Positions 1-55,419 of a DNA stretch of 64,000 bases are shown in pieces; position 1 is the first letter of the stretch, and each line of letters opens with the position of its first letter. The translations under genes were made by a program, and so were the position numbers. The notes under the pieces were generated by a model. That model ran no database searches, was not told the origin of the DNA, and was given only the letters and a program-made list of their open reading frames with translations. Origin of the DNA: Setoptus koraiensis (Eukaryota; Animalia; Arthropoda); assembly GCA_048013815.1 (NCBI GenBank), contig CM106586.1:6944001-7008000 (forward strand), written 5' to 3'.

Positions 1-624
1 TTACTTGTTGCGCTGATATTGCTGATGTATTTTGCACGTGTCTATATTTGTCGTGATATTAAGCGTGGTTGTGCGTTGGAATAATTGTACTAGATTATCC
101 ACTTTAGTTGAAGCTTTCTCGAGAATCTTATAATCCATTCTATGAGCATACGATGATTTCATCAATTGTTGTCGAGGGAACCATTTTGCAGCTATACTCA
201 ATAATCTGCTAGTGGGCCCATGTGAACTGCCAAACATCTCTTGTGATGCATATGTCATATACAAAAAGCCATCTTCGTCTTTGTTTTCTGAGTAAATTTC
301 GGCTATCGATTTAGAATTGCTTATAATTGATTTGTTGTTTATAACGAAATAAAATGATCGTCCAGGCGGTATTTTGAGCCTATTCCTTATGAGCTGAGTG
401 AAATTAGACATTGTCAACTCTTGGGGAACGAGAAATTTTGTCTTATCCAACAAGGGCAAATTGACCTCACGTTTGTACCGTTCAACAACAACGGGTATCT
501 TATTAGGGAATTTCGCCCTTATTCCCTCTACTTCGCCTTTTCTAATCTCAAATGACTTCCGTTGTTTGAAAGGCTTGTTGAGTGTGTTGTTGGTAACAAT
601 GATTTTCTCCGCATTGGGTGCCAT
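1..624 (-). CDS. MAP1LC3C: Autophagy ubiquitin-like protein, LC3 subfamily (LC3C-like), 207 aa precursor; predicted ATG4 cleavage after Gly132
   Basis: Intronless ORF with KPFKQRKSF, IRAKFPNKIPVVVERY, LDKTKFLVPQELTM and KDEDGFLYMTYASQEMFG, closely matching LC3C. Gly132 codon GGC at 231-229; stop TAA at 3-1. Confidence 0.95.
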   Translation of the reverse strand: MAPNAEKIIVTNNTLNKPFKQRKSFEIRKGEVEGIRAKFPNKIPVVVERYKREVNLPLLDKTKFLVPQELTMSNFTQLIRNRLKIPPGRSFYFVINNKSIISNSKSIAEIYSENKDEDGFLYMTYASQEMFGSSHGPTSRLLSIAAKWFPRQQLMKSSYAHRMDYKILEKASTKVDNLVQLFQRTTTLNITTNIDTCKIHQQYQRNK

Positions 625-691
625 TATGTGATGATGATATAACTATCAAGGGGATATATTAATTATGAGTGCAGAGTAGTTGGTTGCGGGA

Positions 692-821
692 CTGCAAGTA
701 GATATAAATATAATGTGATAATGTTCGTTTGTTATAGTATGTTGAGTCTTGTTAGTAGGCAACACTTGTAACCAATCTACAGTATTGATACTATTATATG
801 TGTGTGTATATTTGATCTCAC
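692..821 (-). other. Predicted 130-nt intron in the LC3 5'UTR
   Basis: Minus strand has donor GTGAGA at 821 and acceptor tatttatatctacttgcAG ending at 692; size matches other introns in the window. No transcript evidence. Confidence 0.55.
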
Positions 822-2888
822 ATGTGAGATATGCTTCAAGTTGATGGTGCCTTTATCGCTCTGCCAATTGATATATGATGTAGTTATTTGCGATGATGAT
901 GATGTTAGCAGTTGTTGTTGTAGTAGCACTGACGATTTTTGATATCACTATTGATATTAACAACATCATTAATATCAGCAGTGATATTTTTGTTTTTGTC
1001 GATCACTATTTCTATTATTTTAACTTGGACTAGCTTCGATTTTGGTGATGGTGACGACGGTGTATCGGTAGCAGTGGTCGTATATGATGCAGGATGTTAA
1101 ACAACAAGATACAGGTTCAATAACAATAATAAACAACGATATTTAGCTAGGCCCACTTCGATAGATAATGCCCTAATAATTGCTGAAAATTTGCTTACTG
1201 ACACTTTGTGAGATTGATATGATTTGCGATGCGACCTATTCAATCAATTTTAGACACACTATCGAAACAGATTGTTTGATTGTCACTGCAGGTTTGTTTC
1301 TCCTTGTTCAACATCGGTCCAATGATAGTTTGTTTGGTTGACAACAATTTGATGAGAAAATGGAGGTAATGTGGTCGCGGACCTGTTAGTTAGTTGGCAG
1401 ATACAGATATCAACATGCGATGATGATAGTATTAGATATTTAGTATTCATCTAGTCAGTGTTACTAGAAATTTCAGTTTTGGTGCAATTTTACACAAACA
1501 ATCTATCTACCAATCAATTCATCTATAAATGTGTTGTTCGTTAACCTCAACAACACCACTATGGCGTACACAATTGTTGGCTCTACAATTATCGACTGCC
1601 ATTAAATGTTAACCAGTTTATCTATCCGTAGTTGAGTGAGTTACGACTATTGAGTGACGGAGACACATCACTTTATATTGGTAGTGATTTGCGCTCGGAA
1701 ATGTTAGCCTGGTTTACTAACAATTGGTTTATATTATCAAACCGATCTTATTTGCATAACAGCTGTGCCTAACAAACGTAAGAAGTTAATCCTTTGCAAG
1801 TTGTTGGATAATAATGATTTTGATTCTTTGTCCACAAGGTATTCGCCTTTGGTGGATTTGCAATAGTTGAGTGAAGGTGAACCCGACCTGGACCTCTTGC
1901 GCGTATGATATATTTATTATCATCAATTGCCGATTATCGATTACAATCACAAGATATAGCCAACTGTGTTGTTGTGTTGACACAAACAGATAAAAGCTTA
2001 ATTCCACTCAAGTTTCATAATTGACAAACAATATTTGACTGTATACACTTGTTCACCTCAAGTGCTCACTCTTAAATCGCTTGCTAGAAGCAATTGAATT
2101 GGACGAGATTAATACATCATTTGTTACAGCTATTCCTGCTAGCTATTGTTAGTAAACTTCCATGATTTCACAAATGAGTCACACATGAGAGCTGGATGAG
2201 AGATATGATTTGTGATCGAAATAAATAAATTATCAACAATTATTTGTATATGATGAAAAAAGTATCATCTTGTTGTTTTGCACACTCCACAAAGATAAAA
2301 ATCCTAAAATTACAATCTTATCTTGTTGTGTAGACAAAGAGAGTTTACATTTACACGTTTGTTGGTAAAGAAACAAAACAACGCGTAAATCCTTGTGTGC
2401 CGATATCGCCAGACATGTCTGCCAAGTCCTAACTGGTGCGGCTTTGTTCATTCTACGAGAGGGCACCCATGGCAAAGGCGCCCACAATGGCCGCATCGAA
2501 ATATAACGGTTCGGAACCGCTTCACCTTGCCAGAGAAGCACTAGGGTGTGTGATTTCGATTTTTCTCTCTTGAGCCTTGACGTAACACGTTGTAACACGG
2601 TGAAAAGAAAGAAGGATAAACAAACGTCGCGTGTCGAACACGTGCTCTCCAATTGTGATCTAATTTGTGATCAGCTGTCAGCTAATAATCTGCCTTTGCA
2701 GCGCAATCAGAGTTGTGATTGCGTGCTATGCTGTTTGTATCAGATCTTATACATCTTATAAACATAAATACATAAAAGAGATAAAAAGGAATATAAACAA
2801 TTCGCGAAACATCCAACTGCCAACTATTGTGATCTGACTGACACTCTTTGTAAGACCCTCACTAAATCCATTCAAAGCTTCAGGAATC

Positions 2889-4387
2889 ATGATCTTCAAG
2901 GCTCACTACGGACTTTGGTATGGAGGCCTGGTGGGTATCATGCCATTTATGTTCAACTATGCAAGTTTTTATTCAGGAGCAACTGCCACCCAACACGGAA
3001 CATTGTACACTATATTGCCCTTTATTGCTTTGCTAGCAAAACCGATAGTGTGTTCTTTTGCCGATAAATATCATGTCCACAAACAAGCGTTGATATTCTT
3101 CATCGCGACCACTATGTTAGGTTATGGTTCCTTGGCTATTTATCCGTTCTTTCCAGATCTAACGGATAAGCACAAAAATCTACTCTGGATACTTTATTGT
3201 GTGGCGGCTACTGTCGGCAACACCTCTATGTGCATTGTGAACTCACTGGGTGATACATTAGCTATAAACTCATGTAAAAGAAACAATCGTACATACGGAG
3301 AATACAGATTATGGGGACCAGTGGGTTTCGGTGTTCTGGGAGGCCTTTGGGGATTTGTGAATAAGCTGCCTAATTTGCCATATTTAATACCAGGTATACT
3401 AACCCTCATCATAATTCACATTATTAATATAGTTCTTCTGGTCTCATGGAGAGACCAGGATGAATTTAAGATAATCGATTCAGACCAATGTAAGTCCGAC
3501 TCCAAACTCAACTCATACGGCACTACAAATCAAGAAAATCCCGTTAATATTGAGTCAGATAGATCAGAAAATGGCGGCGGGGACCGGATAATGAATGTGG
3601 ACACTTCAGGAGAACATCAAATAGGAAGACTTCATTTATTCTGGTTGCTTTGTAAATACAATAAGTCAATGCTTGGTTTCATTCTACTATTCACGTTATG
3701 CGGAGTACTGACTGCCATTCAGTGGCAGTTCTTTTTTGGTTATCTTAGTACATTGACTCAAGATCAAAACAAGGACTTTTCAATTCTGACGACACTAATA
3801 TTACCGGTGCAAAGCTTGGGAGGCGAATTAGTCTTCTTCTTCTTTTCTGGTAAAATTTTGACCAAATTAGGACCTACATTAACTCTAACATTTTGTCTAT
3901 TTAGTTTCGCATTGAGGTATCTTGCATACGCATTCATCATACCGGTTGTCTCGATATACTTTATACTCGTTGTTGAGTTACTTCAAGGTCCAGCTTTTGG
4001 TCTGATGTATTGTGTGCTGACACATCAGGCTCAACATTATTCCAGCCGTGTCGACCACATTGTTGTTAGGTTTAACCTAAGCAAAATCTATAAAAATTCC
4101 TTGAACGCTACTTTGCAAGGTGTGATAGGTGCTTCTTTTGAGGTAAGAAAGCAACAAATCCAAGCACACTGCCTAAATTTCAACTACCTATTGTTAACAC
4201 AATCTAACAAGATCTATCTTATCAACAATCACACAATCAGGGTTTGGGCCTTGGTTTAGGTGCCATTGCTGGCGGACTGGCTTACGACATTGCACCCAAA
4301 CTCATGTGGCAAATAGCGGGTTTCAGTGCGCTAGGTGCAGGTCTTGTGTTATTGGGCATTCATATGTCCCGTGCTTTTTCTACCTAG
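2889..4387 (+). CDS. MFSD6: MFSD6-like major facilitator superfamily transporter, join(2889..4142,4241..4387), about 466 aa
   Basis: FKAHY...GGLVGIMPF, LGDTLA, YGEYRLWGPVGFG, GGELVFFF and ELLQGPAFGL motifs with multiple TM helices. GTAAG donor at 4143 and CAG acceptor at 4240 give FE|GLGLGLGAIAGGLAY to TAG at 4385-4387. An upstream exon is possible (ttcAG at 2883). Confidence 0.85.
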
Positions 4388-4604
4388 TCCGGAAGTGAGA
4401 AACGAGTCTATATTTAAGACATTCTTTATTTATGAGATAAAAAGGAGAAAATATCAGTGGAGCTCTGTGTTGTGTTGAGCCAAATTTATGATTAGATATG
4501 TTTCATCACACACTTTCTTTATGTGATTCATGTGTGCTTGAGATCTGTAATAAAGTTCCTTGAAGTGTTAATATTAATTTTCTAAGTGCTCGAAGATAAT
4601 ATCA

Positions 4605-5198
4605 TCACCAACGATGCAAATCAAATTTATTTTCCTCGATAATCTGCTTTTTTTTATTATAATAATATTTTTTTGAACTGCAACGGCCTCTTGCCCTCTC
4701 GTACTCTTTGTATACGGAGGGCCATTTGGCCTTGGCCTCCGAGCTTCGGAACTCTACATGAGTTCCGTCAGCCCAGTAAGTCAACACCCTGCCATACCTA
4801 CCCTTACGAGGGGCGCACTCGATTCGGATAGGTTCGGGAATTGCTCCATTAATAGGGCAGGGTTCTGGTCTGATGTCCTCATGGGGTCCTGGACCCTCCT
4901 GCTTGTCGTTTATAACGAAATAAAAGGATTTTCCAGGCTGTAATTTGAGCCTATATCTTATGAGCTTAGTGAAGTTGGCCATCGTCAACTCCTCAGGAAT
5001 AAGAATTTCGTCCATATCCAACGAAGGCAAATTGACATCACGTTTGTAGCACCCAACAACAATTGGTATCTTATTGGAGAATGTTGCACTTACTTCCTTT
5101 ATATCGCCTTTCCTAATCTCGAATAACCTTCGTGGTTCGAAGGGGTTGTTGAGTGTGTTGCTGGTAACAATTATTTTCTCCGCATTGGCTGCCATCAT
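4605..5198 (-). CDS. Chimeric ORF (197 aa): diverged LC3 residues 1-99 fused to an unrelated C-terminus with chromo-shadow-like features; possibly a pseudogene
   Basis: First 99 codons align without gaps to LC3 (about 33 of 98 residues differ by hand count). Homology ends near 4902 (VINDK vs VINNK). No FG C-terminus; ORF uninterrupted to TGA at 4605. Confidence 0.6.
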   Translation of the reverse strand: MMAANAEKIIVTSNTLNNPFEPRRLFEIRKGDIKEVSATFSNKIPIVVGCYKRDVNLPSLDMDEILIPEELTMANFTKLIRYRLKLQPGKSFYFVINDKQEGPGPHEDIRPEPCPINGAIPEPIRIECAPRKGRYGRVLTYWADGTHVEFRSSEAKAKWPSVYKEYERARGRCSSKKYYYNKKKQIIEENKFDLHRW

Positions 5199-5874
5199 GT
5201 GATGATGATATATCTATTACGCGATATAGTAATTATGAGCGCAGAGTAGTTGGTTGTGGGATGATGCTACAAGTTGATGGTGCCTTTATCGTCTTGCTTA
5301 TAGATATATGATGTAGTTGCTTGTGATGACGATAACGCAATTAGCGTAATTACGAAACACGTTGTAACAAGGCGAAAAGGAAGAGGGATAGACAATGTCG
5401 CGCGTGTCAGAGGTGCTTCTTTTGGGGTAAGAATACAACGAATTTAAGTACACTGACTAAATTTCAAATACATACTCAAATATATTAGAGTCCAACAAGA
5501 TCCGTCTATTCAATCATCAAATGATCACGGTCTGGGCACTGGCTTAGGTGCCGTTCCTAGTGGAATAGCTTACGATATTGCTGCTCAACATTGTAACTCG
5601 TGGCAAATAGCAGGCTTTGGTGCGCTAAGTGCAGGTCTTTTGTTATTGAGCATGTATCTCATACTTGGTCTGCCCAGTCTGGAAGTGAAAAACGACTCTT
5701 TATTTAAAACATGTTTTATTTATAAGATTAAAAGGCCTAAATATCAGTGGAGCTCTGTGGTGTTGAGCCAAATTTATGATTAGATATGTTCCATTACACA
5801 TTTTCTGTATGAGATTCGAATCCGCTTCATGTGTGCTTGAGATCAGTAATAAAGTTCCTTAAAGTGTTAATATT
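4902..5874. repeat. Collapsed direct tandem duplicate of the LC3-MFSD6 unit (about 327-4575)
   Basis: Collinear blocks: 4902-5261 = about 327-691, 5264-5345 = 831-909, 5357-5408 = 2584-2635, 5411-5874 = 4127-4575. Confidence 0.9.
5411..5874 (+). pseudogene. Remnant of the MFSD6-like 3' end (exon tail, intron, last exon, 3'UTR)
   Basis: aggtgcttcttttggg|gtaag copies 4127-4147. Last-exon copy encodes GLGTGLGAVPSGIAYDI..WQIAGFGALSAG, but the acceptor CAG is mutated to CAC and the upstream coding sequence is deleted. Confidence 0.85.
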
Positions 5875-6041
5875 GTCAATACATTGTAATTCCTTAATTG
5901 GTCCAAGATAATAATTTGCCCAGTTAGGGTAATCGATTTAGGCTTGCTTGGTGCAAATGATCAATCAATCGCATACGTCAAACATGGATGATGTTGGATT
6001 GTGGATTTAAACGACGACTGTTCCTAAGATAATAAGATTTG

Positions 6042-22660: not shown

Positions 22661-25600
22661 ACATACAAGCCACTGCCAAACCAAACAGCGGCCAAACCAA
22701 TGAAGCTAGCAGCAAAATTAGAAAAATGCTCGCCATCAGATATTTTTCAGTTCGGTAGCGGCCAAATTGTAGTGCTTGCAAACAACAACAACGACATGGG
22801 GCGCCCATGATGGCGAGCCCGAGCCGGTGCCGTGCGCACGGGCCAAAGCGAACGGCTGGGCCGGGCTCGACACGCACGCCCCGGCGCGGGCCCGGCCGGC
22901 CGGCTAGCCGGCTGGCAAGCCTTTGCGACAGGTGACATCTAGCGTCATTTAAAAGTAGCGCTAGCAATTTGAAAATAGAAGCCTGTCACACTTGACATGA
23001 CAACTTTTTGTTTTTTGTTCTTGTCGCCAGTCGTCGGCAGTGGGCGCCGGCAAGCGGCGCTGCGAATTAGGAGGATTGGCGCCCGCGACAACAACAAACA
23101 ACGAAACAACGCTAATATCTCTTTGTTTGTCGCTGCCCCTACTGTCAATGTCAACAAGCGAGTGATTAGAGGGGCTCTAAATTAGTGGCCGCAAATTGAC
23201 GACAGGCCCACTGATTGGGGCCAGGCACTCGAGGCGAGCTTGTTCAGCGGTGCGTTCGGCGGGCCGCGCAACTGTCAGTGGGCCCACTGTGCGCGTTGCC
23301 TAACAGGTAACAACGGATGCCACTTGCACCAGATTACCAGTTAATTGCTTCCTGTAATCGCTTAACTGTGCCCTGTGCGGCGCGGCGCGGCCCGGCATGG
23401 CTTGTGCAAAAAGCGCGCGGCCCGATGCGCAGAGCGTGCGCGCTCTTTTTGCACGAACGCCCCTCGGCTCGGCGCCCGACCGAGCCGACGGGCGCCGAGC
23501 CGGCCCGACCCCCGCGACCCCTGCGACCCCACCGACTTGGCAAACTCGTCCGAGCAAACACTGGCCCCCTCGCGGAGCGCCCCGCCAACAACTTGGCCAG
23601 CGCTTGGCGAGCCGGCCGACGCGGCGCGCCAGGTGACAGGCCGGGCGAGGCGGAAGTGTTTGCCTTGGAGAAAAATATCCAACTTGAACAATAATTATTG
23701 CGCAATCACACAGTTTGCTACGGTCGCACCTACGGCGATCATTTTGAAATTGCTGTCGTGTGTGTGTGTGTGTGTCTGGAATTGCGATTGTGTCACCATT
23801 TGCACAAGTCAGTGAATTTTATTAAGTGCGGCCCATTAACAAAGCTCGTTCGATTATTATTCATTCTGTCTGTGCCCCGCGCCCCGCGTTGGCCGGCGGT
23901 ATTAATAGTGCAATAATAACAATTTCCCTGGCGACCAAAATGTAGCTTGCGTGGCTCTTTAGCAGGCAAACACACACACACACACACACACACGCCAACA
24001 GTGAGCAAATATATATAAATATACGGCCCAAACATACATTCGAGCTTTGCTGGGGGCGCCATTAGATGGCGCTCGAATTACTTTTCTTCCGAGCCAATGC
24101 ACAGAGGGGCCCCGACGGCCGGCACACACACACACACACGCACACATTATGTCACACATTCCTCAGTTGTGTGTGTGTGCGCCGATTTGTTGAACCAGAA
24201 GAGAGCGAGCTCTAAATGATAGTTAGATGGTGTGGCAGCGAGACAGTGCTGGCGCAGTTGCACGAGCGAGCGGTGCACGAGCGAGCGCTAGGCGGCGCGA
24301 GTTGGGGCCCGCGCGCGCGTCGCCCGCCAGCCCGGCGCGTCTGGCAAGCCAGCTCGGCGCGTCTGGCAAGCCAGCAGCCGGGCAGAATGAGAATTAATAT
24401 TGGGCCCACACACACACACACACGCACACACACACACACACGCACACGCACACGCACACGCACACGCACACGCACACGCACACATACACACACACACGCA
24501 CACACACACGAGCAGCAAGAGGCCACAAGGAAAAGGAGATTGCGGGAGGGGGAGGGGGTGGAGGTGAAATCTAGTTCAGCCGCCTTGGCGGAGCCTCATC
24601 ATTTGTTCTTGGGGGGAGACGGGCGAGCGCCAACAAAGGGGCCACGAGCGACGCGGCGGCGCCCCCGTCCGACGACGGCCCACTTTGGGTCGCGGCTCGG
24701 GCGCGCGTGCCAGCGAGCGTGGGCGTGCGGGCGCGCCACCAACAACCAGCCAGCCAGCCAGCCAGCACGCTAACAGCAGACAGCAGCGCGCGCGGCCAGC
24801 AATTTACTGAGAACTCGATTCGAGCGCCGAGCCCGCCAATGTGCCAATTCGCCAAGCCAGCTAGCTTGCCAAGGAACGGCGGCTCGTGCCGCACAGTGTG
24901 TATGTGCGCGCGTTGAGCGTGCAGTTGTGACGCAACCAGAGCGATCGCTGATCGCAACTGCAACTCGCCCGAGCGCAACTGCGGGGCCCGAGCGCAACTG
25001 CGGGGCCCGAGCACAACAGCGACAACAGCAACAACACGACAACCAGCCGCCGACGGCAAACGGCAACGGCCGCAAAGGTGTGCGTGTCGGGCCGCGGGAC
25101 GTTCAACCGCGCCAAACAGCTCTGATTATCGGAGCGAATGATACGCTGCGAATGCTGTTTTGACGGGCGCCAAAAATGCGAGCGCCCGCTCAAATGGCCG
25201 CGCCAACCTCAGCCTGGCCACGGACGGCGGCCGGGCGCTGACCGCAACCGGCGCGCCGCCCGAGTGACGCGCCCGCAGACGCAAGCGGGACGTTTGGTGC
25301 GCAATCCGGTCGGCCGGACGGCGGCCAGATTGCGGCTGCGGAACGACCGAAGCGCCGCAACGCCGAAACGCCAAAATAACTAAAATGCCAGAGTGGCCGC
25401 AATACCAAAATAACCGAAATACCAGCGCCGGCCGAAATAGTGAGAGCGGCGGCCAATTGGTTGCGAGCGCCGTTTCGGCCGGCGCGGACGGCAACGCGAA
25501 GCCACCAACGAGCGCCGGTGAAGTGGCGCCTCAATAGTTTATTAGGTAATAAGAGCGCCTTGCGCGAATCAGAGGGCGCCAACGCAACCAGCCTACGTAA

Positions 25601-26163
25601 CCAGCCAACGCAACCAGCGGCGCCCGGCCAGCGACACATGGCGCAACGGATACGGCGCTGGCACTGTACCATTGGCACTGGCTCGGGTGGCGCGCGGCTC
25701 GTGGCAGTTGCTCGTGCAAGTGGCGACGCGATAATGCCTCGACATCTCTCAACGTCTCGGGCCCGTTTGACACACGACAACGCGCACACCGCGATATAGC
25801 GCCGCAGCGACGTAGCGGGCCGAAACAATATAGCCGCACGATATGTTGTGCGGCGTGCCCATTTGCCCCAGTTGCCCATTTGCCACCGGCTGGCCGCCGT
25901 CGAACGCGCCCAGCGCCCGGCCAAACAGCGGGCTCCGTTGGGGCCGCTCGACGATGATCGGGCCGCGCCAAGCGGTGCCAGCGGGCAAGCTCGGCTCGGG
26001 CCGCCCTGCACGACACACTCTTGGAAACACACACACACACCCAGACAAACACGCGCTCGTGCGAGCTCCCGGGCAGCGACGAGGGGCGCCGCGCACGTCA
26101 TGTCGCCGCTATGTGACTCTATCAGCGCCCCAAGACGCCAGCCACTGCAATAGCGAACGGGCC

Positions 26164-26328
26164 GCCAGTTGCGTAAGCGAGCAGCCAGTTGCGTAAGCGA
26201 GCAGCCAGTTGCGTAAGCGAGCAGCCAGTTACGTGAGCGAGCAGCCAGTTGCGTGAGCGAGCAGCCAGTTACGTAAGCGAGCAGCCAGTTGCGTAAGCGA
26301 GCAGCCAGTTACGTAAGCGAGCAGCCAG
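26164..26328. repeat. 20-bp minisatellite (RcgtRagcgagcagccagtt) x8
   Basis: Eight units from 26171 to 26330, varying at only two positions apart from a degenerate end on the last unit. Confidence 0.95.
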
Positions 26329-29300
26329 CCGAGCGAGCAAGCCAAGAAGTGAGCAGGCAACAACAAAGCCAGAGAGAGAGAGAGAGCGAGGGGGCCCGAA
26401 CAGAGGGCGCAACCGACGCCACCAACCGAAGCGTAATGGGCAGCGCTCGGGCCCGCGCCACGGGGCTCAAGAGGCGCAAGAGGCGCAATAGGCGCAAGAG
26501 GGCGCATATTTGGCAAAACCACAATGCAACATCAGTGTGGGTTTTCGCGAGGTACAACGACCTTGGAATGGATCGTACGATCGTATGTCAGTCGGTGTTT
26601 TGTTCTTGGCGCTAAGCGCTCGCTCGCGGTCCGATCGTCCGTTGGCTCGGATTCTCGCTTATTTTGTCTTGCCATTCTCTTGTTCGCTCGCTGGTGGCCC
26701 GATTCGGACGCCCCCATCGGCGCAATTGTTCCGCCTTGTCAGCTTGCGCCAGTGCGGACATTATCGAGCCGCTGCTGTGGGGCCCAGTGGCCCAGTTGCC
26801 ACGTAGTGCCACGTAGTGCGATCTGGTGCCATGTAGCGGGCCCCGCACACATTACGTCATATCGTGGGCGCACTGGCCTGGCTCACCTTTGGTATAAGTA
26901 ACCACTGTCGCTCGCTTGTTCCGCCGTCGTCAGTGCGCGCCACCTACAGCACAAAACAGCATAAAACAGCACAAAATAGCACAAAACAGCCAAAAAGCAA
27001 CTCGCCAGCTCGCCATATCTTGCCATATCGCGCCCCCCATCTCAGCTTGCCACAGCGATCGCGCCGCCAGTCAGCGGATTAGCGGCCAATGGCGGGCCGC
27101 GAAATTGGGTCGCTGCCCGCCACTGGCCAAAGGCTCGGTGTATTTGCATAAACTGGTGCCTTATGCCACAAACGACAGCGCATAGGTGAGATCAAATTAT
27201 TGGCCAGGATTCGTGCTCGCGCCAGCCCGTTGACAAACAGCGACGCATGGGCGCCACCTCATCGGACTGCCATCATCACACTCTGCTGATCTCGGGGCCG
27301 GCCGAAAAGCCAGCCCCGAAAATACCCGGTTAGCAGTCCAGCCAGCCGACCGAAATACCCGGTTAGCAGCCCGCCAATTGCTTCAGATTTCAGTTGTGCT
27401 CTCTCAGTTAATTTATTGTGCGGGATATTCGGGGCTGATACGCGGCAGCGGTGAACAGCCGCAAATCCCGACTGCGGTGAGACAGTGATACAGTGCGGAT
27501 ACGATTACGCTAGTTATTTAGCCGAATGGGCAAATGGCGCTAAATGATGATGGCCCACACTAACAGTCGCCCCCGCATATCGTCGTCACATATAACTCGT
27601 TATAGCCAGATATGTGTAGCGAAAATTAGAGAAAAAATTATTTGACGGCCGTTTGCTAATCATTTTGGCTGGCGCTATTTCTGCGCGGGCCCCATTCAGT
27701 CTGCTGGCTGAATGCTTAAATACTCATACGGAAAGAGTTGCCAGATTTACACCACTGTATTGCATAATAGTAGCAGTAGTAGTAGTACTATGTAATAACG
27801 CAATGACGCAATAAGTGGCCTGACACAACCACCAACAAAGAGCAGTAAAATAGAGTTATCTGCCAGCGGTGTAGCTACCAGCACAAACCAAAAGGGGGCG
27901 CCCACACAAAAGGCGCCCCCGTCGGCTGTGGCTCGGCTGATGTGCTGATTCTGACAATTGTCTGGCGGCAAGGGGCCCACACACACATGACCCCAATACA
28001 TAAGTGGGCCCACTAAAGAACGGGGCGCAACATTGTGGGGCCGCCAAGCGGGTTTGTTGCCCGTTTGTCACGCCTACTTTCGTCGGCCCGCCAACTGGCG
28101 CTGTAGGCGCCACTGCGGGCCACTTGCCCGCTTGCCCGTCTGCCCGCTTGCCGGTTGTGCGGCGGGCCGACGGACAAAACGACCGACCCAACAGAATAGT
28201 GCCCCCTCTTTGTCTCTGGAGCGTCGCCCCTGTGAGACGACAACGACGACGACGCGCCTGCGAATCTCAGGCTCACAAAATCATTTTCGCAAACAATTCG
28301 CGTTTGTTTGTTCTTTAATTTGGATTTTCGCCCTTTTCGGCCCGTTTGGTGGCGCCGTTGCCCGGTGGCCGCACCAACTGGCAGTTGATTATTTGTGGCG
28401 GGCAACATTTATCTGGTTCGGCTGGCCGCTGGACACATTGCCGCCGACACGACGGCGGATAAGCGATCAGCTCGAGCCCGCCGTGCAGATAAACAGCGCA
28501 TAATAACTTGTCATAATAATAATAACTCACAAGTGCACCTTTGGCCAGCCGGCCGGCCGGCCGGAGTGGCCGCTGGCGAGCACTGATAACAATATATAGA
28601 TATATAATATTTATAAATATATATAGTTGCGCAACACTGTCATATTTATATTTGTATTTATTTTCGAGTTTACCTGTCTGTTTATCTGTCGCAATGTGTG
28701 TTGCAATGTGGGGCCGCGTGGGCGCGCGTGTCGCCACAATCGCCAGTGTCATTGTGTGTGTGACGCAATCAATAACGAAGCTCGATAGACGGCGCCAGCG
28801 ACCACGATAATATTGGCGCGCGGCGACAGCGACCAAAGTTGGTGCCGTCACACTTTATAACGGATAGTCGGTGCCGCTAAGACAGCGTCTAGACACTAAC
28901 GGGGGTCGCTTGCACGGGCCGCTCGCGCCTCAATTGTGCGCGGCCTCAACTCGCGGCGCTGTCAAGTCGCGAACGCAGCTAGGCGCCTCCGGTCGCCATC
29001 ACCTGGCAGCCGGTCGGCGTCGATGCTAGCGCCGCTGTCAGTGGTTGTGTGACAATCGTCGATGACACACGATCAATCGCGACTCGCGACACCGCGCGAC
29101 AACGTGCGCGCCCGACGGCGATTGCGGGCCGGTGAGCGCACAACGTTGCGCTCGTTTGGCGCAGTACCCGCGACGCCACTCGAGCTCAGCCAGCGCCGAG
29201 CCCAGCCAGCGCCGAGCCCGGCCAGCGCCCTGGGCACCGGGGCATTGTCGGGCGGGCACATGGGCCGGCAATGCTCAAAATTGTTCAACATTCGGTTCAA

Positions 29301-31311
29301 CATTTGACAAAACCGGGCGCCACACAATGCGCGCGCCACCGCCCGCCGACCAAAGCCAAACAAGCGCATTAAGCCACGAAAGATAATGCCCCCGTTGCCA
29401 AGACGGCCCCAATGTGTGTGTGCGGCGGAAACGAACATGGAACAACGGAAATGGGCGCTAATATATATATATATATATATTTCTCGGTGCGCGGGTATGA
29501 ATATATTGTCATTGAGGTTGTGTCATGTTGGAATGAGAATGTCGCCCGATGTTATATCGTATTTATTTTGTTACTTTGCTGCTGCATGCTGTGCAGGGCG
29601 CCCTCTATCTGTCGAGCGGTTACGTAGTGGCGTGGCGCGCATTCGTGGCGCAGTGTGTGCGCCGCTGAACGGTGTTGGCAGCGATAACGTTTCACTTGTG
29701 ATAGTGACAATCATGCGTCGCCAGGTGGCTTTTGACAGCTTTTAGACAATAGGGGTCGCGCACAGTGGGCAATTTGCATGATCGATGGCGAGTCACTGTC
29801 AGGCCAAATTTTGGTGGACACAGGTTGATTATATGCACACGTAATGCCGCCATTAGCAAGCCCAAATGAGCAAACAGCAGAAACGATGATTGATTTGCCA
29901 GATTTGATTGAGAGAGATCGCGAGATTGAATTGCGGCCGCATAGGCACCGTGTGCCACTGACAGTCGCCGTGACAATCGTGACGCAATCGACTTGACACA
30001 ATTATCAACTGTCATCAGCTGTCCGGTGCTTATTTATTTATCATTGGTCATCTGTTTGTGTGTAGACAACCAACTGACAACACATTCACAGCTAATTATT
30101 TATCTTGCGCGATTGGCACCGGCCGGCCGGCCGATGTCAATTGTCAACTGTCAACTGTCAACCGCTCGCCCACTAGGCGCTCTTCCGGTCACCTGTTCCG
30201 GCCGCTCGATTGCCGGTTGCAGGCCAGTGGCCGAGGGCCAGTCGCCAATGCAGAGACCGAGGGTCAGTCGGCGATTCAGTGGCCGAGGGTGTTAGTTTGA
30301 ACGAAAATGCATGTTTCAGCCACATGACTCATGTCGATGTGGGCACTTTTGTGACACAAAACACTTGTCACCGACTGTCACCGATTGCACATAACTGGCC
30401 CGCGCTGATGCCCACAGGGGCCCAAACGGCGCCATTTCGGCCAGCAGGCGACACGACTGTTTGTGTGCCACTTTTCACAAAATTAGACACCCGTCAACGC
30501 TGACAAAGTTTATTTCAAGTTGTCCCGGTAAGTCTCACAATGTCGGCAACGGCCGCACTGGCACAGATTGGCACAGATCGGCTCAGATGGCTCAAAATGG
30601 GGCCATTGTGTCACAATGGTTGTGAGCCGATCTTGTCGACATTTGCGATCATCGCTCGTGTTGCCGCTTGCCGTGTAGCCGTCAAACTGTTGGGCCGTCG
30701 CCGGTGCCAAACCGTTAAACTGTTGAACTGTCGGGCTGCCAGTTTGGCCGCCCAACAGGCCGCTAAACGGCGGTTATTACGACCGTTATTAGAACCGGTA
30801 TTGGGCGCCCGGCCTTTTCAAAGGGCTGCCAGTGTTGCGCCGGCGAGCGACTTATGGACTCCGTAATATGGACGACTGCACAGATGACTGCGCAGAGCGT
30901 CGCCCGCACAGACAGTGGGCACAGACAGTGGGCACTGGCAATCACAATTGGCCACCGCAACCGGTTGGCACACACATAAAAACAAAATCGGCGCACCGTA
31001 AAGGAATGAAGGGCACACACGCTCGCATGAGCCAGTGGCAAGCTCGCGAGCAGCATGACGCAATCATGTTTGTGTGCGCCATCGACTAATCATGGCGCAC
31101 AGTCGCTATGTCCCGGTCGCCATGTCCCGCCATGTGCCGCTATGTCGCGCTAGGCAAGCTGTGTGAGCTGTGTGACAGTGGGCGAGTTTGACGCGAGCAG
31201 TCTGGTGACATTGTGTTGTTGATATTGTCATTGGCGCTAGTTGGCCATTCTTTTACACACACATATTGACGGCTTGCACAAGCGGCAACTGTAATTCTGT
31301 TTTCCTGTCAC

Positions 31312-31359
31312 ACAACAACAACAGCAACAACGACAACAACAACAACAACAGCAACAACG

Positions 31360-31441
<82 letters not shown>

Positions 31442-31442
31442 C
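31312..31442. repeat. (CAA)n microsatellite
   Basis: Near-perfect CAA run with a few CAG/CGA interruptions. Confidence 0.95.
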
Positions 31443-31904
31443 GGCAACGGCGACCACCGCAAGCATCAACGAGCAGCGTTTTGCAATTGTGTGCAGCTAG
31501 CCATTGTTGTTGTCGTCACACAAATATAATGTAATATTATATATTGCAGTCCGCCCGTGTCATGTAATGTTATGTAATGTGCTCGCTGAGCGCTTGCAGC
31601 GCCACCCGTTTCTGTATCAATGACTGACTTGCATGTGTGCGTGTGCCTCTGTCAGATTTGCTTGTCGCCTCTTTATGGCTCCTAACAAGCCCGGCTAGAC
31701 GGATAAAGCGCACTCTAGATTCGCATAACAGCTTGTTGTAATCGCGTTGCGTTTGGCTGGCCAGCGCGCCCACAACGCGCTGCCAGCATTTGCTTGACAG
31801 GGCGCCCCCTGTTTAGCGGCTCTCCCGCGCGCCACTTGACCAGCAGCGTCGCTCTGGCCGGCCCGGCCCGGCGCTCTTGTCCGGTGGCGCGCCATCAGTG
31901 CGCC

Positions 31905-32010
31905 TCTGTCGGGCTTTGTCGGGCTCTGTCGGGCTCTGTCGGGCTCTGTCGGGCTCTGTCGGGCTTTGCCGGGCTTTGTCGAGCTTTGTCGAACACTGTC
32001 GGGCTCTGTC
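31905..32010. repeat. 10-bp minisatellite (cgggctctgt) x about 10, degenerate
   Basis: Direct inspection. Confidence 0.85.
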
Positions 32011-32184
32011 AGCGTAGCTGTGCCAGTCGGACGGCGCCGGGGTCACATTAACGGACAGTTCACTAGAGAGCGCCACCAGACGAGCTTGACCACAACTAGG
32101 CCGGCACAGTGCGCCAACCGTCTGTCCGTGTCGCTCGGTGTGCCTAACCAGCCGTTCACTTTCAACGGTGTCGCCGTAATGCTC

Positions 32185-32305
32185 GCTGTGCTATATCCGT
32201 GCTGTATCTGTGCTGTATCTGTGCTGCGTCTTTGCGATATTTGTGCTTTATTTGTGCAGTGTTTGTGCTGTGTTTGTGCTGTGTTTGTGCCGTATTTGTG
32301 CTGCA
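32185..32305. repeat. Degenerate 11-bp repeat (tgtgctgtrty)
   Basis: gtgctgtatct / gtgctgtgttt units. Confidence 0.75.
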
Positions 32306-32905
32306 TGGCCCATACCGCACACCGCACAGCTCCATACGGCACAGCTGCAGACGGGGCGCTCTATATAGCTGTATAGAGCCCTGTATAGAGCTGGCCGTGG
32401 CGTGGCGAGACCGCTGAGAGTTGCGCAAGTGCGAAAGGGGCCCCAGTTGCGAGACTGGCACACAATCGAATCATATTGGTGTGATATACTGAGATATTGT
32501 CATGAAATGAGCGTGCCCTGATACCGCCGCCACACATTGTTAATATTGTTGCGCGGCACAGAAACAACTGGCCCACTCACTATTGTTAGCTTGGCAGCGC
32601 GGCCAATGGGGCCGACGGGCCGAGCTGGCCCGTGTCCACGCAAGAATGAATTTTAATGCGGCCGCTGCCTGTCCGTGCATTTGTTGTGTGTGTGTTTGCA
32701 CAGTTTGGTCGTCGGCTGGCCAACGCGCTGGCCACAAACAACAAACTGCTGGCCACTGGCCAAAACGATCCAAACCAAAAATAGCCTAACCGCCATCCCG
32801 TCGCACGCCAGGCGCCCCCACAGCCGAGCCTGGGCCATCTAGACGCCGCGCCGGCCAGCGGGCCCCTCAGCAGCGCCTCTCGTTTTGGCGAGCTCCGCCG
32901 GGCCG

Positions 32906-32960
32906 GCGCTGTCTGGCCAGCGCTGTCTGGCCAGCGCTGTCTGGCCAGCTCTGTCTGGCC
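32906..32960. repeat. 14-bp repeat (gcgctgtctggcca) x4
   Basis: Direct inspection. Confidence 0.9.
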
Positions 32961-33621
32961 GGCTAGCCGAGTCGAGCCGAGCTGGCGATGCCGCGTGCAA
33001 AAAAGGGGCCCGGCCGCGCGAGCGGCGCCCGAAGCCCGACGGAGAGTCGGCGAGTGGGAGAGCCCGAGAGCGTGCTAAACGTTTTCGATGGGCGCGTAGC
33101 TTCGAAAGCGCAGGTTCGAGGGCACGGCTTCGGGGGCCCGCGTTCGACGGCTCGCGCTCGAAGGCTCGCGCTCGAGTTTGAAAGCGCCCGCTCAAGTTGG
33201 GCGCGATATGATAGTTTGAAGAGCACGCGCCGGGACCCATTGTTCAAATACAAACACACACACACACTGCGCTAAAAAGGCAGAGGTGGGGCCCGCGCGA
33301 GACGCAACAACAAACTTAATGACACCGCACACACACACTGTAACCCCGGCCAAGCGAGCGCGCGGGGCCCGGTGGGGCCCGCGCGCTTTATAGCTGTTGG
33401 CGGGCGCCCATGTTGTTGGCGGGCGCCCATGTTGTTGGCGGGCGCCGATGTTGTTGCCGAGTCGGCGGCGGGCCAAGTGTGTGTGCCGATAGGCGCTTTT
33501 TTACCTGATCAGCTATTCAATTACGCTGACTCGTCGCTGGTCGCGCCGCTAGCTGCCTAGCGCCTGCCGAGCTGGGGGCCGGGGCCGGCCCGATGCTCGC
33601 TCGCTCGCTGGCGCAAGTATC

Positions 33622-33750
33622 CTTATTACTATTATTACTATTACAACTATTACTATTATTATTACCACTATTATTACTATCACTATCGCTATTATTATTA
33701 CTATTATTATTACGGCGGCTATCACTATTATTATTGCAACTATCGCTATT
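33622..33750. repeat. (TAT/TAC)n trinucleotide repeat
   Basis: Direct inspection. Confidence 0.85.
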
Positions 33751-34811
33751 GCCATCTGGCCGGCGGGCCGGCAGTTAACGGGACAATGAGATCGATGGAG
33801 GCAGCACATAAATTGTATATTATTTGGTGTTGGCAAGGCGCCGCCGCGCTGTTGTTGCGGTCACTAACTATGTGCGATATAACTAGCACTTGTTTGTCGC
33901 CGGCCCGGCGCTGCTGTTGTTGCGCAACCGGCCCACCGCTGCAAACTGTCCCTGGGAACTGTGCACAGTTCGCGCTTGTTGGGCCAGCCGGCGCGGCCCC
34001 ACTGGCCCCAGTTCGCAGTTGCGTGGGGCCAACAATCACTGGCGCGCTTATATCGCTCGGCTCGGCTCACATATAAACATAAAAACACAACACACCAGCC
34101 AGACAGGCCAACAGGCAAACAACGGCAATATTAGCTTTTGGGGTTCCGCTAATACCGCTGGCCGCCAGCCGCGACAGTTATGTCCAATATGTTGCTGTTG
34201 TGTCATGGTGTTTGCCTTGTGTTGTGCTTGTCGTGGGCCCGCACCCACGCAACGGCGCACCGCTCACAATTGGCTCGCGTCGGGCCCCAGTGGCAAGCGC
34301 TCGCTGGCAGCTACTTGAGCCCGAAATGTTGTTGCAAAATGCCCCAACTTGACTGGCCAGCTCGCACGCCAGCAGCGTCGAGTGTGCTCGTGCCAATCGC
34401 TAATTGTGTGCCAATGTCTCTCGCCGGCGCAATCACTCGCTGGCGCCCCACAATCGCTGGCCACTCGTATACTATACGACGGCGTCTAGTATACGCCGTA
34501 TACAATCACTTTTATACGCCGTATACAATGGCCGAACGCGACGCCAGGCTCGCGCTTTTAGCTAGCTCGCCAAGCCCAAGCTTGCCAATGTTAGCTCGCC
34601 AGCGCTAGCTTGCCAGCAAAGCCGACACATAATCACATAAAGTGTGACTAGGGGCGCACCGTGGCCAATATCCACTCTTGCGGCTTGAGCCGTGCGTCTA
34701 TCCGTTGTCGGCTGTCCCGGGGCCAGTGCTCAGTGCTGTGATATCCATGTATATCGGACATGCGCCCCTCGTTCGTGCATACCCACGGCCAGTCTCGATA
34801 GGCATGGATAC

Positions 34812-47013: not shown

Positions 47014-55419
<8,406 letters not shown>

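Follow-up and report, generated by a model that had tools for sequence, protein, structure and literature searches.

An LC3 gene fragment with an orphan tail, left by a partial tandem duplication in the mite Setoptus koraiensis

Gene duplicates that are partial or chimeric and take up flanking or junction DNA for their new 3' end reportedly form a class in C. elegans, as described by Katju and Lynch. Chimeras of a comparable type in Drosophila include jingwei and Sdic. The locus discussed here resembles this class in that a breakpoint lies within coding sequence, the promoter and the 5' codons are kept, unrelated DNA carries the frame to a new stop, and the arrangement is lineage-specific. It differs in that it is known here from sequence alone, and in that deletions are plainly eroding the remainder of the duplicated unit.

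The other natural comparison is with unprocessed (duplicative) pseudogenes. Like these, the locus is a truncated copy beside its parent, with accelerated substitution that is blind to codon position and with invariant residues lost. Unlike these, it retains an uninterrupted open reading frame (ORF), complete with a start codon and a proximal upstream region.

The window, which is the whole stretch of DNA that was analysed, is 64,000 nucleotides long. It starts with a complete LC3-type gene, here called A. The ORF of interest, called B, is 197 codons long, lies on the minus strand and runs from an ATG to a TGA at 4605-4607. The features of the locus, in window coordinates, are:

1 to 624, minus strand: parent gene A, a complete intronless LC3C-like Atg8 gene (ATG8 profile positions 2-104, E 2e-35).
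332 to 4600: the parent duplication unit, holding the 5' part and upstream region of the LC3 gene, intergenic DNA and a whole MFS gene.
4601 to 4902, minus strand: junction DNA, called X, which encodes residues 100-197 of B; 302 bp, single copy in the genome.
4605 to 5198, minus strand: ORF B, an LC3 fragment plus an orphan tail (ORF call and Pfam).
4689 to 4838, minus strand: residues 121-170 of B, earlier read as chromo-shadow-like; no profile support, sub-threshold fold resemblance.
4903 to 5198, minus strand: the LC3-derived codons 1-99 of B, gap-free against parent 332-624, with about 82% nucleotide and 66% amino acid identity.
5199 to 5333, minus strand: copy of the LC3 upstream region (parent 625-900), without parent bases from about 692 to 830.
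5352 to 5405, minus strand: copy of parent 2580-2634, sandwiched by two large deletions; its junction with the next segment has (G/T)ACAC microhomology and no splice signals.
5404 to 5912, plus strand: C', a decayed MFS 3' end that aligns with parent 4120-4600 and comprises the last intron, the last exon and the 3' UTR.

Protein A has 207 amino acids and shares 73% identity with an LC3C entry from Fragariocoptes setiger, an eriophyoid mite, which makes a mite of this group the likely source of the DNA. The nearest protein found is P0001, with 191 amino acids and 78% identity, on an 11.7-kb Logan contig (L019) from a sister species. A continues for about 75 amino acids past its processing Gly (FG followed by SSHG..., window 1-228, minus strand), and P0001 partly conserves this extension (L019:9051-9230, RMDxKILEKxSxKVxNLVQL). 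It is an unusually long and conserved Atg8 C-terminal propeptide. Many Lepidoptera have LC3-like proteins that are also long (matches P0003-P0022), at 212-250 amino acids or roughly twice the usual length of Atg8. These are top-scoring against the 207 residues of A, of which they cover about 50-76%. Two closely similar Atg12-like genes (L009 and L010, at G000:C2 13.48 and 13.29 Mb) lie about 190 kb apart.

The assembly measures 48.8 Mb in two contigs, and the genes seen in the window are mostly intronless. Published two-chromosome assemblies of eriophyoid mites measure 47 Mb (PMC11920263) and 34.5 Mb (PMC11879100). GC content is strongly heterogeneous in the window: it is 0.56-0.64 at 24000-34000 and at 48000-52000, against 0.36-0.44 in the first 14 kb.

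The sister-species contig carries peroxiredoxin, RING, MFS, ATG8 and a large gene, in the same order as the window and in reverse orientation. By BLASTN each segment is single there, with 223 bp from the 3' end of the MFS gene to the 3' end of the RING gene, and no counterpart of about 4601-5912 (X plus the copy) is found on it. Synonymous sites put A and B at a distance of 0.44, and A and the L019 gene at 0.87. In addition, the MFS 3' ends of parent and copy have six indels in common against L019. Because of this absence, these distances and these common indels, the duplication is dated by sequence comparison to after the split from the L019 species, which makes it specific to this lineage.

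The preliminary description of this DNA had called the copy young, and the fact that the whole block is missing from a syntenic contig of a sister species bears this out. The same description suggested looking for orthologues of the chimera in sister species; the contig with the same gene order has no such block.

A mis-joined or collapsed duplicate in the assembly would be a more mundane origin for the block. The copies are about 18% different however, with several indels and deletions, which is far above the level of haplotypes or read errors. The flanks of the block are collinear with L019 at both ends. Such an artefact is extremely improbable.

The parent unit is about 4.3 kb long. Its MFS transporter gene is on the plus strand, from 2889 to about 4400, with a 3' UTR behind it. 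The degenerate second copy spans 4903-5912, and four pieces of it align to the parent:

Copy 5874-5404, parent 4575-4120, 77% identity.
Copy 5405-5352, parent 2634-2580, 84% identity.
Copy 5333-5255, parent 900-823, 84% identity.
Copy 5261-4903, parent 691-332, 83% identity.

The first piece reaches 5912, the equivalent of parent 4600, in a three-way alignment with L019. All four are collinear with the parent, are in the same orientation and adjoin the unit, and the block is missing in the sister lineage: it is a tandem segmental duplicate.

Much of this copy is gone. Three deletions, of about 1.5 kb, 1.66 kb and 0.13 kb, have together taken away about 3.3 kb, and two (G/T)ACAC motifs border the junction of the first. 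The copy of the MFS exon (window 5530-5700) has a 4-nt deletion and a 6-nt insertion compared to the parent and L019 alike, which makes it a dead fragment. About 25 nt separate the copy from the RING gene, where L019 has 223 nt between MFS and RING. A conserved proximal upstream element of the parent is still present in B.

A retrocopy origin was considered, prompted by the roughly 130 nt that are missing upstream of the ATG of B, and was rejected. At the boundaries of the two large deletions GT..AG is absent, as judged from the three junctions that were read. This means that these are deletions at the DNA level, and not the result of splicing. The copy also includes the upstream region and pieces of a neighbouring gene. 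The upstream gap itself does not look like a clean intron excision, and there is microhomology at one junction.

The course of events is best explained as follows. In the mite lineage, after the split from the species of L019, a unit of about 4.3 kb (332-4600) was duplicated in tandem. The left breakpoint fell inside the intronless LC3C-like gene, such that the second copy retains the LC3 upstream region and codons 1-99 and is missing the remainder of the gene. The frame of this second copy reads on through 302 bp of junction DNA (4601-4902) until it meets a TGA. Three DNA-level deletions subsequently collapsed the copy, removing the MFS coding region. The LC3 fragment was released from the Atg8 type of constraint and has lost its LIR-docking lysines. 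Its product cannot fold as a complete ubiquitin-like domain, nor be processed or lipidated.

The LC3 part of B is readily recognised. Positions 332-631 and 4903-5202 align over 300 nt without gaps at 81% identity, and homology between A and B breaks off sharply at 4902/4903, which is codon 99 of B. Residues 29-98 match positions 2-70 of the 104 positions of the Pfam ATG8 family (PF02991) with E 3e-12 and 47.1 bits, where the cut-off is 27. This match and the nature of its parent tie B to the LC3C-like subfamily of Atg8/LC3.

B differs from that subfamily in what it lacks, which is the C-terminal third and the processing Gly. The Gly that Atg4 exposes for lipidation has no equivalent in B, which diverges ahead of the ...QEMFG (residue 132) of the parent. 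The last helix and the last strand of the ubiquitin-like core are also absent. In the ubiquitin fold, this last strand is the middle of the sheet. AlphaFold, run in its weak single-sequence mode, gives residues 1-122 a pLDDT below 50. No separate 3' LC3 fragment was found near B by local comparison and a scan of the genome with the ATG8 profile. Earlier statements that residues 1-99 are a gap-free LC3 paralog without the last strands and the Gly, and that this Atg8 fragment is non-lipidatable, therefore hold.

The preliminary description also spoke of an intact chimeric gene. The chimeric ORF of 197 amino acids is indeed uninterrupted. The LC3 part of it, however, evolves as if freed from Atg8 constraint. 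Changes per lineage were polarised with L019 as the outgroup, over 97 aligned codons:

Lineage B: 32 amino acid changes; 43 nucleotide changes, codon positions 18/12/13.
Lineage A: 1 amino acid change; 4 nucleotide changes, codon positions 1/0/3.
Lineage L: 7 amino acid changes; 32 nucleotide changes, codon positions 8/3/21.

A first outgroup, consisting of two distant paralogues from the own genome (one of which came from two joined exons), gave 14 for B versus 3 for A and was superseded by L019.

There is no codon-position bias in B, and L has the bias that is typical for a constrained gene. For the B branch, NG86 distances give an omega of about 0.43; its bootstrap interval, 0.16-1.46, includes 1. 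The pairwise dN/dS against 1-624, which had been proposed as a check on the gene, comes out at 0.40. This is the expectation for one constrained and one free copy.

Conservation was assessed with 37 LC3C-like proteins from across animals; within the span of B, 42 columns reach 90% conservation or more. Of these near-invariant residues, 41 are kept in A and 22 in B, so that 20 are altered in B and 1 in A. The losses in B include P40S, E48G, R49C, K61M, T62D, K63E, F64I and N81Y. Both lysines of DKTKF are hit (K61M and K63E); these are the equivalents of K49 and K51 in LC3B, two residues lining the site where LIR motifs dock. Judged by these comparisons, B is certainly not under purifying selection at the Atg8 level.

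Per site, B also changes faster than its dead neighbour. It has 43 changes in 291 sites, against 30 in 379 for the MFS fragment, a rate about 1.9 times higher. This excess may be due to positive selection or to regional rate variation.

If it is positive selection, B could be a functional young chimera that has taken on a new role outside Atg8 conjugation, its fast change being adaptive. We consider this unlikely. The omega point estimate of the B branch is below 1 and the conserved upstream element of the parent is retained, both of which would fit a functional chimera. That same omega is indistinguishable from 1 however, and the substitutions fall on the three codon positions without bias. 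The ubiquitin-like core also has to do without its final helix and its final, central strand, and AlphaFold models the LC3 part with low confidence.

The more direct argument for such a functional chimera is that all 197 codons of B are free of stops and frameshifts, while the co-duplicated MFS exon is frameshifted. In simulations that placed 28-56 random substitutions on the parent, the LC3 part remained stop-free in 21-43% of trials. The dead flank, polarised with L019, has 2-3 lineage-specific indels in about 480 nt. At this rate about 1.5-3 indels are predicted per 297 nt, with a probability of roughly 0.05-0.25 of finding none. Because the polarised flank has only these 2-3 indels, the indel test for selection is not significant. 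An unpolarised version of this case (8 indels in 458 nt, probability of none 0.005) was rejected, as it pooled both lineages and alignment artefacts. Under neutrality the openness of the LC3 part would not be remarkable.

The tail keeps its frame open for 98 further codons, which 0.2-0.4% of shuffles of the tail DNA also do. This is beyond chance, and it too would favour function. The GC-rich piece of X is fully open in one antisense frame as well. There is also the matter of ascertainment: the case was chosen for being open, and an ORF 40 codons shorter would equally have been flagged. The intact frame of B is mild evidence for function, and its openness is probably partly luck and partly ascertainment.

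On the coding strand, X consists of a 226-bp piece at 56% GC (4676-4902), followed by a 75-bp A-rich piece at 24% GC (4601-4675). The surroundings of the first piece are at about 39% GC on either side. The preliminary description saw a Lys-rich, NLS-like tail at the end of the protein. This Lys/Asn/Tyr-rich end, which includes KKYYYNKKKQ, is simply what the A-rich piece translates to. That non-homologous junction DNA keeps the frame open for 98 codons more is correct, since similarity to the parent stops at 4902/4903. The bounds first given for this DNA need adjusting: 4601-4902 is indeed unique, but 4576-4600 fall within the duplicated unit and have orthologous bases in the sister species.

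A donor locus had been expected elsewhere in the genome, and the search for it matched only the site itself. X has no second copy in its own genome, be it as DNA, in the coding frame or in the open antisense frame, and no significant local alignment anywhere in L019. The idea that X is the ancestral spacer between MFS and RING was dropped, as X does not resemble the 223-nt spacer found in L019.

Relatives of the tail were sought widely. None were found in a word-indexed search (with residues 100-197 and with the whole ORF), in the ESM Atlas, in a full HMMER scan of 1.84 billion protein representatives with the minus-frame translation, or in metagenome or prokaryote contigs. Pfam assigns no family to three translations of X, and the tail has no match there at E up to 10. 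Searches with A and with B did not bring back the query protein, from which it appears that the proteins of this genome are outside these collections. The absence of B from them therefore says nothing about its annotation. As evidence against a functional chimera, it is to be read with the apparent omission of this genome's proteins in mind. That no relative was found in any other species also argues against a functional chimera.

The composition of X allows for another reading, in which the duplication junction picked up a piece of real coding sequence in the right frame. Such a piece might stem from a gene that has since been lost, from a transposon or virus outside current sampling, or from foreign DNA. 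The GC content and the open frame would then be explained without selection on B. Besides the GC contrast of 4676-4902 with its flanks, two of its six frames are open, its composition is protein-like, and on the coding strand it leads into an A-rich run. Set against this are the lack of a relative of the minus-frame translation in the 1.84e9 proteins and in the metagenome and prokaryote contigs, the fact that the DNA and the plus-frame translation are single in the genome, and the blank Pfam result for all three translations. We hold such a capture to be rather doubtful.

This leaves the most specific claim about the tail, namely that residues 121-170 are a chromo shadow domain (CSD, PF01393) as found in HP1/Swi6, a domain that homodimerises and binds PxVxL peptides. 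As a dimerisation domain of this type, it would turn B into an adaptor between the Atg8 fold and heterochromatin. There is some likeness: the size is similar, the predicted order is a hairpin plus two helices, and a few letters agree (P-E-x-I, W, P, Y-E). The motif letters are present in the tail, and aligning them to a CSD by eye requires three indels in 50 residues.

The genome itself provides good material for comparison. A scan with PF01393 readily detects eight CSDs in the 48.8 Mb, none of them at B. L011, L012 and L013 (G000:C2 19.12, 16.40 and 6.23 Mb) are near-identical copies of an HP1-like CSD, of which L013 has an in-frame TGA. A CSD profile was made from an alignment of seven of the eight PF01393 matches. 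As a control, this profile detects the HP1 CSDs of human, mouse and fly (E 1e-17 to 1e-23) as well as that of Rhino, which is divergent (E about 1e-4).

The tail does not behave like this. When it is compared one-to-one with the genome's own CSDs, hhalign reports a probability of 0.13% and E 0.46. A search with hmmsearch --max finds no reportable alignment between the tail and the CSD profile, and 1207 of 2000 shuffles of the tail do score, at up to 7 bits. No CSD is among the best 60 rows of PDB sequence matches of the tail. Pfam finds no chromodomain in B; its N-terminal part is the Atg8 fragment, and the architecture of HP1, with an N-terminal chromodomain and a hinge, is not there.

The best PDB match of the tail by phmmer is in fact a mouse Fab heavy chain, at the V-D-J/CH1 junction (CDR3/FR4/CH1), with E 2e-4. 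It spans residues 125-164 (window 4707-4826) with the pattern C-A-x-R-x-G-x-YG...YW..GT.V...S.A..K.PSVY. A relationship with antibodies was rejected as chance, given that the PDB contains thousands of variants of this junction and that the large search lends it no support. The match does show how easily such motif patterns arise.

Structure prediction had been suggested as a check, and its outcome is mixed when set against the CSD fold, in which a three-stranded sheet packs on two C-terminal helices. The full-length single-sequence AlphaFold model has a mean pLDDT of 46, with the tail at 62-80 as a beta-hairpin plus helices; this moderate confidence for the tail is a point in favour of a functional chimera. 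A tail-only model, also from a single sequence, has a mean of 54, and its strand positions differ from those in the full-length model. For both of these low-confidence models, the few compact (rmsd below 6 A) and domain-sized matches found by Foldseek are mostly CSDs of HP1, below the trust threshold (E 1.6-7, probability 0.38 or less, TM 0.35-0.49, and 15-25% identity over 33-52 columns). VIA aligns CSDs to these models with Z 2.5-4.1 and rmsd 2.9-3.9 A over 57-62 residues, a result that is tied with Sac7d. In a VIA search of 48,161 representative chains, an HP1 CSD scores Z 2.8 where the top is 3.7, and about 1000 chains reach at least Z 2.

So CSDs, of Rhino as well as many of HP1, are among the nearest PDB folds, and the predicted order of elements is beta-beta-alpha-alpha. 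But the scores stay below the levels at which the tools are to be trusted, on models with low pLDDT and inconsistent strands, and the structural match is at noise level. Pfam, the PF01393 scan, hhalign and hmmsearch are all negative, even though the profile picks up Rhino. The single copy of X also leaves no donor locus that bears a CSD. By its sequence, the tail is not a member of the chromo shadow family, and its motif resemblance appears to be at chance level. A dimerisation domain of this type is highly improbable, and the idea of an autophagy-chromatin adaptor is unsupported.

A looser version of these ideas is that B is a translated and selected young protein, in which a remodelled N-terminal Atg8 fragment is joined to a small newborn alpha/beta domain, encoded by the junction DNA, that is chromo-like by convergence or by descent. 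This we also judge improbable.

Our preferred reading is that B is a decaying by-product or relic of the duplication, or at most a proto-gene, and that it is probably without function. We would put the probability of this at roughly 0.65.

Should B be no more than a relic, it is an unremarkable but neatly resolvable case of how partial tandem duplication makes chimeric reading frames. It would then also show the speed at which a deletion-prone, streamlined genome dismantles an extra copy. If B is expressed and maintained, it would provide a dated new protein tail made from junction DNA, absent in a sister species at about 20% divergence, and this would be relevant to how genes are born, both de novo and as chimeras. 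And if there should indeed be an alpha/beta domain in the tail, this would be domain birth by capture at a duplication junction, caught in the act, in an animal genome that is among the most streamlined.
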